64,000 nt of DNA, taken from the NCBI RefSeq assembly GCF_964204645.1, contig NW_027437454.1:1-64000 (forward strand). Direction: 5' to 3'. Both the position numbers and the translations under genes were made by a program. The notes beneath the pieces are model-generated. The model made no database searches. It was not told where the DNA came from and saw only the letters and a list, made by a program, of their open reading frames with translations. This stretch comes from Tubulanus polymorphus (lineage: Eukaryota > Animalia > Nemertea). Below, piece by piece: positions 4,053 to 33,560 of this stretch. The first letter of the stretch is position 1. Every line of letters begins with the position of its first letter.

Positions 4053-4978
4053 CTGTTGCAACAGTGAAAGAAGGTTTCACGCAGTCTTCAGTTGAGATCC
4101 GTAATGGCACAATCTACAGGCGCGCCTCCTGGTGACAGAATAGTCGGAATGAACAATTGAATAAGATCCATTAGGAACGATTGCCACCTCTCGACTTTCA
4201 TCGGCGCTGAATCGATGCAGCTGACACGTTTTTGACAGAACCTCGAATAAAAAAAAAAACATTGAAAAAACAGATGATGAGCCGAACAGAGCGTGGCGGC
4301 GGCGGTGGCCACAGGTGACGAATATCGCGTGACTCGAAACTCGTTACGTGGCCACCGTAACTGGCACCTGCAGCCCGCGTATCACGTGTCACGTATCGGT
4401 CAGCGGAACAATCGGCGCCGTTGAGAATACACAATATACGGATACTAATCAACATCAGACGGATCCGCTGTTCATTAGTTCCGTTGTTACTTAGCGAGAC
4501 TCGTAATTTATAAATCCCTGGCTATGAGAATGAACTCGGGCTATATGAGTTCGAGGTTTCGACTGTAAACGCAGTCTCAAATGTTTTGTGACTTTCTCAA
4601 AATGTATCAAAAATTTAACTAATTTTTAGTTCATAAGTCCTCAAATATTCATAAATGCACAGTTAAAAATTGTTGAAACATGTCGACTCTGCCGTAAAAT
4701 CAACCTATTAACAGTCCGCAATTTGGGAAAATATCGGGCTTTAGAGAACATAATGCCCCCGAGGTCTTCACATTTACAGAAAAGATTACGTAAGTGATTC
4801 ACGCGCAGCGCGCGATAGGCGCACAATAGAAATCTGAGCCGCGCGTTCTTTGAGTGTCACCAATTCGGGCTATATAAGTTCGAGGTTTCGACTGTTATCC
4901 GCATTTCCTAGTTTATGGTATCTAACATCGCATGAAGAGTCTGGATTGTGTACTATGTATCCCGGTTTTTCGTTAAAG

Positions 4979-5045
4979 AACTAGTAATTCTGAAGATCCG
5001 ACTGTCGGAATAAAGTCGAAACGTTAAATAAATAAACCACTTATT
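4979..5045 (+). repeat. Degenerate solo copy of the hammerhead repeat
   Basis: CTGAAGA(4990)..GACT..AGTC-GAAACGTT..AATAAACCACT; stem I is weak. Confidence 0.5.
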
Positions 5046-28987: not shown

Positions 28988-29243
28988 TTGTGGGTTTAGT
29001 TTCACTCTGTACCCAGTTCCACAGTTGTGCGGGTTTAATTTGACTCTGTACCCAGTTCCACTGTTGTGTTAGTTTAAATTGACTCTGAATTAAGTTCCGC
29101 AGTTGTGCGGGTTTAATTTGACTGTGGATCCAGTTACACAGTTGTGTGAGTCTAATTTGACTATTAAGCCCGGGTCCACAGTTGTGTACTAGGTTTAGTT
29201 TTACTCTGAACCCAATTCCACAGTTGTGCGAGGCTGAATTTGA
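28988..29243 (+). repeat. 39-bp minisatellite array
   Basis: About 6.5 units. Confidence 0.9.
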
Positions 29244-29325
29244 CCCCTTCACATCCATTAACAGCGCATCAAATCACAATCGATTATATTCTCCAATCAT
29301 CATTCAAACACTGCACTCTCCTCCA

Positions 29326-29929: not shown

Positions 29930-30092
29930 GATTCTCAGTTCTGCAGAGTTAGCTCTAACTCATCAGAGTAAACTCTTACTCACATGCTGTGGAAATGGAT
30001 CCTGAGTTCAGAGTTAACTCCAACTCACAACTGTAGAACTGTATCCCGAGTTCAGAGTTAACTCTAACATACAACAGTAGAACTGGATCCTG
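29930..30092 (-). repeat. 44-bp variant repeat
   Basis: Reverse complement of the 9298-9410 unit. Confidence 0.75.
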
Positions 30093-30584
30093 ATATGAGT
30101 TTCATAAACAAAATTTTGTAGTCTTTTTTTGAATTTGTTAGTATTATGTATATGAATGTTTGTTGACACTTTCACAAGATCCAGACGTTTATATTTACAT
30201 TATTATAAGCTGCGCCGGAATCGTTTTTTTTCCTCTCTCGCTCTCTCTCTCTCCCTCTCTCTCACTCTGATTTCCCCCAGGTTTCACTCGGCGGTAAGAT
30301 CCTATGAATAATGTTAATATTCGCCTACTGCTTGCAGGGCTATCGCTCAGCGGTTCTGCTTTTTGTAAATGTCACCAGTAGTTTTCGTGTGAACGCGCTC
30401 GCTTTTTCTGACACACCAAACATCGAAGCATAAAAATGCTAAAACTGGAGATGTTGGGCGGTTCATTCTAGACCGGATAGTCGGGTAGTAACCGCATTAA
30501 GGAAACACTGTGAGTCGGTGTTGTAACTGTATCATAAAAATATATCACATTATAGAAATATATAACTGTAATTGCTCAAGATAT

Positions 30585-31205
30585 CATAGAAGATGACATT
30601 AGGACAAATTAGGACAAGGTCGAAACGTTGAATAAACTACACTAGCTCAAGGAATACAGCATTCCTGAAGATGACTATTAGGATATAGTCAAAACGTCGA
30701 ATAAACTACACTAGCTCAAGGAATACAGTATTCCTGAAGATGACTATTAGGATATAGTCAAAACGTTGAATAAACTACACTAGCTCAAGGAATACAGCAT
30801 TCCTGAAGATGACTATTAGGATATAGTCGAAACGTCGAATAAACTACACTAGTTCAAGGAATACAGTATTCCTGAAGATGACTATTAGGATATAGTCGAA
30901 ACGTTGAATATTAAACTACACTAGCTCAAGGAATACAGTATTCCTGAAGATGACTATTAGGATATAGTCGAAACGTTGAATAAACAACACTAGCTCAAGG
31001 AATACAGTATTCCTGAAGATGACTATTAGGATATAGTCGAAACGTCGAATAAACTACACTAGCTCAAGGAATACAGTATTCCTGAAGATGACTATTAGAA
31101 TAAAGTCGAAACATTGAATAAACTACACTAGCTCAAGGAATACAGTATTCCTGAAGATGACTATTAGGATATAGTCTAAACGTCGAATAAACTACACTAG
31201 CTCAT
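30585..31205 (+). ncRNA. 69-bp tandem array of minimal type I hammerhead ribozyme motifs (8 cores plus 1 degenerate)
   Basis: Unit contains TATTC-CTGAAGA-T-GACTAT(TAGGAT)ATAGTC-GAAA-CG-TY-GAATA: stem I, CUGANGA, stem II, GAAA, palindromic ACGT in place of stem III, UH. Cores start at 30665, 30734, 30803, 30872, 30944, 31013, 31082 and 31151. Confidence 0.8.
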
Positions 31206-31744
31206 GGAAACATTTCGTACTTTATCATTTATTCTATGATAGACGATCGGTAATGCGGAAAGAAATTGTGTTAAACAGTGGTGGCGTTGAGAAACCGTAG
31301 CGACTGCAGCGGCGATATTTACTGAAATGATAATTATTAATGAATAATGATTATAATGATTTACTGAGAAGAATTTCTTCCAACGCCACTGATTATAACG
31401 TTTGATGGTCATAGTGTGAAGGTCGGATTCGGTGTTAGTTCAAAAGGTTGCGCAGACGACAAAACCAAACACTTGTGACATGTGACAGCACGTGACCACG
31501 TGTTCGTCTGCCAATCTGTTGCTTTCGATGATTTCCTTTTTTATAGTGCTCCAATCACATCACGTGTTTCGATCTCTCACTGCGCGACCCCTCGAACAAA
31601 AAAAAACATCTGTCAACGTTTATTTAACGGTCGTTTAATCTGCGCCAGGCGCGATCGACAAATACACACTCAACACTAGAATGGTGGATCTCCGACGATA
31701 CTGTGGCAATCGAGGATCCCTTATCGAGACAAGCGATAGTCGCC

Positions 31745-32077
31745 AGGTGTCGCTAGTAGTTACAATATAACCCCACGTTTGTTGCTCCTAGTCCTTGTAT
31801 TCAAAATCATCACGAGCATAAATGTACACGGTACTCATCATTAGACCTCCGATGCTACTGTGGCAATCGAGGATTCTACTTATGGCAAGCAAGGTTCCAC
31901 CAGGTGCCGCTAGTAGTTACAATATAACCCCACGTTTGTTGCTCCTAGTCCTTGTTTTCAAAATCATCACGAGCATAAATGTACACGGTACTCATCATTA
32001 GACCTCCGATGCTACTGTGGCAATCGAGGATTCTACTTATGGCAAGCAAGGTTCCACCAGGTGCCGCTAGTAGTTAC
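31745..32077. repeat. 157-bp tandem duplication containing the CTCF-like repeat
   Basis: GCTAGTAGTTACAATATAACCCC at 31752 and 31909. Confidence 0.9.
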
Positions 32078-32674: not shown

Positions 32675-33560
32675 TGCCATAAATCCCTCTATGACAAAAA
32701 TCAAATCGTCAGCAGTAGGCAAGCTGATGATGTCATAGGGGGATTTATGGAGGCAGACACCATTCTCCAGAAGTGTCAAATTATTAGTAGACGATTTGAT
32801 GATATCATAGGGGGATTTATGGAGGCAGATATCATTCTCCAGAAGCGTAAAATTATTTGATGATGTCATAGGGGGATTTACGGAGGCAGATATCATTCTC
32901 CAGAAGTGTCAAATTACTAGTAGACAATTTGATGATATCATAGGGGGATTTATGGAGGCTGACATCTGTTCTAGAAGTGTCTTTGCACACGGAATCAGTA
33001 GGTTGTTGGGGGTTATTGAGAAATCGCGTAGCGTTGAATCAACACGCGATTATGTAAGGGTCTCCGCAATTTAGGACAGAACCGGAAGTGATAAGCCGGG
33101 CGGAAGTTTACTACTGATGTTCGTTAGCGAGTATTCGTAATTAAACCCGAAATGAACAGCTGGTAATTAGCGACGTGATATAAATTACTTCCGATACATG
33201 AAATACCTACACATTTACAAAGCGAGATCCAATCGAGACGACGGCCATCTTTCCTATTGAGAGTATCTAGATTCAATCGGTAGTGACCATGTCGATGACG
33301 TCAAAGGGGGATTTATTTAAGTGGAAATATTTTCTAGAATAGTCTATAAAGATCGAATGATTAGTAGACAAGTTTCTGATGATGTCATAGGGAGATTTAT
33401 AGAAAGCTTTATAGATCTAATCACTAGTCGGTATTTAATGTCATGGGGTGAATTTCGTGTAGGCAACGAAATCGATGATGTCATAGGCGCATTTATTGAA
33501 GCCGCCATCTTTATGCGTAAGGTATGACTATCAAACCAACTCGATAACGTCATAGGGTGA
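32675..33560 (+). repeat. ~79-bp repeat clusters (32675-32985 and degenerate 33290-33560)
   Basis: GATGATGTCATAGGGGGATTTA cores. Confidence 0.8.

Follow-up and report, generated by a model that had tools for sequence, protein, structure and literature searches.

The 69-bp tandem repeat at positions 30608 to 31209 of the 64,000-nucleotide stretch of DNA analyzed here (the window) is built of units that each carry a minimal hammerhead ribozyme motif, and it very probably arose by tandem amplification of a segment from the 3' end (pseudo-LTR) of a Penelope-like element (PLE). Arrays of the unit, together with the tail that follows them, would be non-autonomous PLE derivatives, and the amplified piece would comprise the minimal type I hammerhead of the PLE itself (~42 nt) and the first ~27 nt of the PLE tail. 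The initial annotation of the window had read the unit as a minimal type I hammerhead of the Penelope type, and direct reading of the units, a descriptor scan, and the match to a PLE all agree with that assignment.

Tandem Repeats Finder (TRF) reported 8.7 copies of the repeat on the plus strand with a period of 69 bp and 93% matches. Read directly, the unit has the layout UAUUC / CUGAAGA / U / GACUAU-UAGGAU-AUAGUC / GAAA / CG / U-Y | GAAUA, that is, a helix I of 5 bp, the CUGAAGA box, a bulged U, a helix II of 6 bp, the GAAA box, an A-CG-U palindrome, and Y17. The descriptor scan found complete motifs with CUGAAGA starting at 30803, 30872, 30944, and 31013 and with H17 at 30836, 30905, 30977, and 31046, in agreement with the four intact cores reported initially and with predicted cuts that would give monomers of 69, 72, and 69 nt. 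The length of the unit equals the distance between predicted cut sites, and the 72-bp unit, as seen on direct reading, results from an ATT insertion at ~30910 to 30912. The four complete-core hammerheads, all on the plus strand, are located at 30798 to 30841 (predicted cut after 30836, GUC; covariance model, 57.7 bits), 30867 to 30910 (predicted cut after 30905, GUU; descriptor and covariance model), 30939 to 30982 (predicted cut after 30977, GUU; covariance model, 70.8 bits), and 31008 to 31051 (predicted cut after 31046, GUC; descriptor and covariance model). The third of these is identical to the hammerhead block of PLE family 1. The 5-bp helix I initially assigned to the repeat holds for the general unit but not for the unit at 30803, which has the variant CAUUC and a helix I of only 4 bp.

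Four other units have defects in G12 or in helix II or III, and here too the outer-unit mutations noticed at first sight were found on inspection. Two units with a G12-to-A change (GUCAAAAC; cores at 30665 and 30734) occupy 30660 to 30772 on the plus strand and are predicted to be inactive. Two more, at 31077 to 31189 on the plus strand, were recognized by sequence reading and the descriptor scan; the core at 31082 has an A.A mismatch in helix II and ACAU in place of ACGU, and the core at 31151 has a G12-to-U change. The array is preceded by a degenerate leading unit (30585 to 30633, plus strand) in which AGAAGA replaces CUGAAGA and helix II is disrupted, with GAAACGUU retained; the covariance model matches it weakly (30579 to 30639, 15 bits).

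Past the last unit, positions 31190 to 31235 (plus strand) contain a diverged remnant of the PLE 3' tail (…CUCAUGGAAACAUUUCGUACUUUAUCAUU…), identified by blastn against the tails of other arrays (81% to 86% over 36 to 46 nt). On the other side, a weak and short match on the minus strand at 30495 to 30524 (87% over 30 nt) to the inverted tail-extension hairpin found upstream of other arrays is a likely remnant of an inverted 5'-truncated copy. Inspection and blastn of the degenerate flanks of this old array revealed no recognizable target duplication, and the inverted-repeat search around it was dominated by the palindrome of the unit itself. The surrounding 4 kb form a repeat-rich patch with four unrelated tandem repeats (28992 to 29244, 29963 to 30093, 31690 to 32077, and 32725 to 32981, with periods of 39, 44, 157, and 72 bp, respectively).

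A second, inverted array of the unit is present on the minus strand at 45059 to 45290, with ~3.3 copies, two of which have a complete core; the covariance model matches it at 45227 to 45278, 45158 to 45209, and 45092 to 45140. This array (44985 to 45290) ends in the middle of a hammerhead, lacks the PLE tail, and abuts a (GAGAGG)n microsatellite; microsatellites have been reported as favored PLE targets (PMC8557442). A solo diverged hammerhead-like motif is located on the plus strand at 4982 to 5035 (AAUU CUGAAGA UCC GACU…AGUC GAAACGUU; covariance model, 33.9 bits, E value of 7e-6), and an inverted GUCGAAAC fragment lies ~100 nt upstream of it, at 4885 to 4900. Together, positions 4880 to 5035 look like the relic of a head-to-head PLE insertion that is unrelated to the arrays. 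The only match to Rfam at gathering score in the window is a tRNA gene on the minus strand (48777 to 48849, 65 bits).

A strict descriptor that required a palindromic helix III and minimum lengths of 4 bp for helix I and 5 bp for helix II gave six hits in the window, all within the 69-bp repeat, and none in 150 random 64-kb Markov-1 sequences searched on both strands (19 Mb); a chance resemblance is unlikely. The Rfam hammerhead models (Hammerhead_1, Hammerhead_3, Hammerhead_II, HH9, and HH10) gave no match at gathering score in the window and, for positions 30400 to 31400, none even at an E value of ≤10, which is to be expected for PLE variants devoid of helix III but is still a negative result. 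The conserved core, CUGANGA … GAAA … U16.1-H17 in type I order, is present, as are a palindromic mini helix III and, 5' of the long helix II, an unpaired nucleotide; helix I is short. Minimal hammerheads published for PLEs likewise combine a short helix I and a long helix II with one unpaired nucleotide on the 5' side of the latter and a palindromic 2-nt insert at helix III (PMC4209133), and given this match in architecture, the extra U is a hallmark of the PLE type and not a flaw.

Other PLEs of the genome have the same design in the same place. The hammerhead of PLE family 2 reads ACGC CUGAUGA U GGCUAA UAGUCU UUAGCC GAAA CG UU GCG, and that of family 3 reads AGA CUGAAGA A GGGUGGU AGUA ACCACCC GAAA UA UU. 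When the three PLE families and the satellite were aligned (four sequences chosen with a descriptor that demands pairing, which makes the selection partly circular), every pair of helix II was formed (100%) and four of the six had changed on both sides; helix I had double changes at three of five pairs. None of 500 shuffles reached the observed covariation score, and pairing dropped to ~40% in slid registers. Covariation of the helices, with the core, bulge, and palindrome kept, supports rather than proves the hammerhead.

The hammerhead block is identical at 40 of 40 positions in the satellite and the young PLE, whereas many positions differ in the adjoining sequence (14 nt on the 5' side and 32 nt on the 3' side). 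In two other organisms, contig matches are confined to ~30932 to 30985 and its counterparts in other units, with 286 matching contigs in run X6 (130 of them at ≥99%) and 11 in run X8. Beyond the match, these contigs (of up to 1 kb) run into unlike sequence in both directions. Judged by these alignments, the hammerhead block is a conserved island. Four independent lines (the architecture, the position in the PLE, the design shared with other families, and the conserved island) thus confirm at the sequence level that the motif of the 69-bp repeat is a real hammerhead ribozyme motif of the minimal PLE type, with predicted RNA activity.

At least 150 GIY-YIG matches were found in the genome, many of them within open frames of ~820 to 840 amino acids. 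The initial annotation had proposed a search for a Penelope element with the same motif, and such an element is present, with the identical block at its 3' end. In one copy (L055, minus strand), an ORF with RVT_1 and GIY-YIG domains has its stop at L055:1264. The descriptor scan placed the motif on the coding strand, and ~290 nt past the stop the element reads UAUUC CUGAAGA U GACUAU UAGGAU AUAGUC GAAA CG UU, followed by GAAAUAAACUACUAUCUCGAAGUUUCAUUUUCGGAC…AUUGUGGGAUUCUCUCCUCAU in a tail of ~77 nt. This PLE family comprises at least 40 copies with 98% to 99% identity, often arranged as head-to-head pairs; it is young and autonomous and appears to be active. The block was present in 10 of the 12 PLE copies read, and the 3' ends of the copies fall at two alternative points 36 nt apart.

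Two further settings of PLE copies were observed. In G000:C4:25,800-64,600, two copies, at 51.6 and 57.1 kb, have 820-amino-acid frames and match GIY-YIG more fully; they lie between (TTAGGG)n blocks at 25.8, 47.7, and 64.5 kb near the contig end, so that an endonuclease-bearing PLE is interleaved with telomeric repeats there. The PLE copy at L063 (G000:C1:16715046-16718816) has an internal 21-nt duplication in its hammerhead (AUUAGGAUAUAGUCGAAACGU twice) and sits in an ORF-like stretch with a "YGWAM"-type motif downstream of the PLE tail; the host ORF possibly encodes the protein-primed DNA polymerase of a Polinton-like element.

The 77 contigs of the assembly total 268 Mb, and (TTAGGG)n occurs at contig ends. 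A four-unit query picked out no fewer than 32 separate arrays, each with 4 to 41 units, on many contigs, and a covariance-model search of the genome found many more. On five contigs of known length, all arrays were located in the outer 22% of the contig; on contigs C6, C8, C9, C10, and C11, arrays occupied the outer fifth or so and full-length PLE copies were mostly interior. The arrays and the hammerhead-bearing PLE family thus appear to reside in different chromosomal compartments. The occurrence of TGTGGG in the tail prompted a search for a bdelloid-type TGTGGG telomere, which was absent; the telomeres are TTAGGG.

The 403 genomic units that were aligned are ~98% alike. Position H17 is U in 86% and C in 13% of them, and the full core is kept in 352 units (87%). 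Variable sites are mostly CpG, the top ones being three CpG dinucleotides at unit positions 61/62, 66/67, and 69/1 that change to TpG or CpA, which suggests that the arrays are, or formerly were, cytosine methylated. A T-to-A change, T57A, breaks a helix II pair in 25% of the units and is uncompensated. Conservation of the catalytic core and covariation of the stems across genomic copies had been put forward initially as a check on the hammerhead reading. Among the 403 satellite units, there was neither preferential conservation of the core (between arrays, 0.050 differences per site in the block versus 0.033 in the linker) nor covariation, so that the satellite copies fail this check, and single satellite copies appear to decay neutrally; both signals emerged solely when PLE families or species were compared with one another.

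Each array has its own variant pattern and its own local higher-order repeats, which indicates local turnover of arrays at the DNA level. No order of variants common to arrays, counted from the 3' tail, was found, as would mark 5'-truncated copies of a master. Units differed at 2.4 positions within arrays and at 3.0 positions between arrays. The boundaries of the unit are the same in all arrays, as is the linker, which differs from the tail of the young PLE at ~8 positions, and we therefore consider that the 69-bp unit arose once and spread afterwards.

Many arrays share a tail of ~80 to 115 nt downstream and have the tail plus one unit, inverted, upstream. For most arrays, the PLE tail can be aligned with the downstream flank (up to 99%) and also with the inverted upstream arm; at the C9:286600 array, the sequence upstream matches the PLE 3' untranslated region (83% over 267 nt). 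The arrays thus take the place that the hammerhead has in the 3' ends of PLEs. We had also considered the flanks as terminal inverted repeats (TIRs) with a subterminal hairpin, as in MITE, DINE-1, or Helentron-like elements, but the supposed TIRs are the PLE tail. Array elements are flanked by target duplications of 12 to 13 bp. Clean ends are seen in two short, young elements. The element at L041 (1993 to 2437) has a 13-bp duplication at 1980 to 1992 and 2438 to 2450, with AACTTCAATTAAG on either side, and that at L031 (1969 to 2636) has a 13-bp duplication at 1956 to 1968 and 2637 to 2649, with ATCGATATCTAGA on either side. In both, the left arm is an inverted hammerhead with a short tail, truncated just upstream of helix I, and the right arm has the long tail; at L050, the long form is on the left. 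The 36-nt extension that distinguishes the long form is found at one end only. An inverted 5'-truncated copy, a one-end tail, and a target duplication were thus encountered at L041, L031, and L050. These scars and the PLE tail support the earlier proposal that retrotransposition in trans disperses the repeat.

Some arrays have a tail 99% identical to the young PLE and units that are only ~96% alike, a combination that points to insertion as arrays. At L041, where the tails are 99% identical to the PLE and the four units differ from each other at 2 to 3 of 69 positions, the element seems to have been inserted as an array. Every well-defined insertion terminates within PLE tail sequence, 77 or 113 nt past the last predicted cut site, so its template appears to have been a linear, uncleaved array-plus-tail RNA.

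A tandem dimer could form a nested double hammerhead in which ACGU pairs with ACGU and each helix I is formed across units. In a nearest-neighbor model, which ignores tertiary contacts of the core, this fold has a free energy of −12.3 kcal/mol, compared with −25.1 kcal/mol for the minimum free energy (MFE) structure. The junction of units is predicted to create a palindrome, GGAAUAC-A-GUAUUCC, that sequesters the 5' strand of helix I, and the active fold is not thermodynamically favored because this hairpin ties up that strand. The autonomous PLE is devoid of the hairpin. A type III hammerhead with the hairpin as a closed helix I was ruled out, as position 17 would then be G. Published PLE hammerheads cleave poorly in vitro (PMC4209133), and in one PLE the hammerheads were dispensable for in vitro insertion (PMC11167929). 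In a 2014 contig set (59,567 contigs, 18.8 Mb, longest 9 kb; sizes transcriptome-like, kind unrecorded), the repeat is present and its unique flanks are absent.

We propose that in an older PLE subfamily a segment that starts just ahead of helix I and extends ~27 nt beyond the cut site was duplicated once. The reverse transcriptase/GIY-YIG endonuclease of the PLE would then insert linear array-plus-tail RNA at new sites, leaving the marks typical of a PLE, namely, a duplicated target site, an inverted copy truncated at its 5' end, and, optionally, a 36-nt extension at one of the two ends. Once inserted, arrays would grow, shrink, and homogenize locally by unequal exchange at the DNA level. In a multi-unit transcript, neighboring units could pair their ACGU palindromes as a shared helix III, cut after U/C17, and release 69-nt RNAs. 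We infer that mobilization occurs in trans by the PLE enzyme, possibly with template switching at the 40-nt hammerhead block common to the satellite and the PLE.

An alternative is that the repeat is an ultra-small retrozyme, whose transcripts would self-cleave to 69-nt RNAs that are ligated into circles and copied by the PLE reverse transcriptase in rolling-circle fashion, a process that would create and spread the arrays. The equality of unit length and cut-site distance, the presence of a young PLE partner, and the full core in 87% of the units speak for such a cycle, and for both PLE tandems and animal retrozymes, copying by rolling circle has been put forward in the literature (PMC4209133, discussion; PMC7229834). 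However, the ends of the insertions, 77 or 113 nt past the last cut site, call for a linear, uncut template, the array-specific higher-order repeats are typical of DNA-level exchange, the strand of helix I is predicted to be locked in a hairpin, and a 69-nt circle would be far smaller than known hammerhead circles, which have at least 220 nt (PMC7761336). We regard this origin as unlikely, and it is similarly doubtful that 69-nt RNA circles serve the PLE reverse transcriptase as templates or as template-switch partners. The history proposed above does without rolling-circle copying, and nothing points to the circular 69-nt intermediate envisaged by the initial annotation, as insertions end in the tail and not at a cut site. 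If true, 69-nt circles would be the smallest ribozyme-bearing circular RNAs known, and the locus would be a minimal retrozyme in direct sequence continuity with its autonomous helper.

It is less probable still that the arrays were never mobilized and arose only in situ, each from a single mini-PLE insertion of hammerhead plus tail expanded by slippage or unequal exchange. PLE copies truncated at the 5' end and starting just upstream of the hammerhead do exist, as this would require, and the array-specific variant patterns, the local higher-order repeats, and the slightly lower divergence within arrays (2.4 versus 3.0 differences per unit) are consistent with local expansion. Independent expansions are nevertheless difficult to reconcile with unit boundaries and a linker that are the same in all arrays and ~8 positions off the young PLE tail, and the unit diversity at L041 and L031 is older than their 99%-identical tails. 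A further reading, in which the repeat is a plain DNA satellite or forms the center of a MITE or Helentron-type element and the hammerhead string is due to chance, can be set aside as hardly credible and already contradicted. In its favor, inverted termini resembling TIRs with a subterminal hairpin surround many arrays, Rfam gives no hammerhead match, and copies decay neutrally. The termini, however, are the PLE tail in direct and inverted orientation and are asymmetric, with a single side bearing the 36-nt extension; the motif matches exactly that of an element with reverse transcriptase and GIY-YIG domains; the descriptor had no hits in 19 Mb of random sequence; and the helices covary across PLE families.

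Amplification of a PLE terminus, the reading that we prefer, would by itself make the repeat a clean but incremental case of the birth of a satellite from a retrotransposon end. One 40-nt ribozyme block is found here in three settings, namely, a young and abundant autonomous PLE, non-autonomous hammerhead-plus-tail elements flanked by target-site duplications, and a 69-bp satellite towards contig ends. They form a natural series for asking whether minimal hammerheads cleave as neighbors 69 nt apart, whether cleavage plays a part in the mobilization of PLEs, and how a transposon fragment becomes a satellite. The in vivo role of PLE hammerheads has been called a mystery (PMC7761336).

As far as the published accounts of minimal PLE hammerheads extend (Cervera and de la Peña 2014, PMC4209133; Lünse, Weinberg, and Breaker 2017, cited in PMC6765202), those ribozymes and the motif of the repeat have in common the CUGANGA/GAAA/UH core, a helix I of 4 to 5 bp, a helix II of 6 to 8 bp, the A-CG-U insert, and one unpaired nucleotide 5' of helix II. 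They also appear to share the pseudo-LTR site downstream of the reverse transcriptase-endonuclease ORF, the occurrence of head-to-head pairs on opposite strands, and an expected dependence on dimers. Here, the motif recurs with a spacing of 69 bp in arrays that range from 4 to more than 40 units, whereas in described PLEs it is present once per pseudo-LTR or in PLE-sized tandems. Minimal hammerheads "in tandem" inside PLEs are mentioned in the literature; a satellite in which a single minimal hammerhead makes up nearly the whole unit was not among the descriptions that we found.

Animal non-LTR retrozymes (Cervera and de la Peña 2020, PMC7229834) are, like the satellite, short, AT-rich, noncoding dispersed tandems with type I hammerheads that co-occur with autonomous PLEs and are homologous to PLE termini. 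The origin of animal retrozymes from PLE pseudo-LTRs has been argued mainly on vertebrate phylogenies (Li, Clavereau, and Pollet 2026, bioRxiv 10.64898/2026.07.22.740005). As the initial annotation had noted, the satellite monomer of 69 nt is far shorter than those of animal retrozymes, for which ~150 to 400 nt are given (PMC7229834, PMC7761336). The satellite hammerhead is minimal, with an open helix I and no loop 1, whereas the hammerheads of animal retrozymes are canonical, with contacts between loops 1 and 2. Unlike animal retrozymes, the satellite arrays end in a PLE tail and have PLE insertion scars. Abundant linear and circular monomer RNAs are characteristic of animal retrozymes; the 69-nt RNAs of the satellite are putative.

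Newt satellite 2 (~330 bp), Dolichopoda pDo500 (PMC2837043), and the Sm-alpha and W-elements of Schistosoma (PMC8490949) are likewise satellite-like tandem DNA with a hammerhead, and by analogy the design of the motif described here resembles their hammerheads, which have a weak helix III and are active as dimers. Their units are 5 to 7 times longer, however, their hammerheads are canonical and match Rfam, and no direct identity to a resident autonomous retrotransposon has been shown for them. The insertions share with those of published PLEs (Craig et al. 2021, PMC8557442; Frangieh et al. 2024, PMC11167929) the 5' truncation, the inverted 5'-truncated copy on the 5' side, the optional 30- to 40-bp "tail" at one end, which has been ascribed to two internal start sites of reverse transcription (PMC11167929), and the target duplications, but the cargo here is a hammerhead array and not an ORF. 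The satellite is a very small relative of the known PLE and retrozyme repeats rather than a new kind of repeat.
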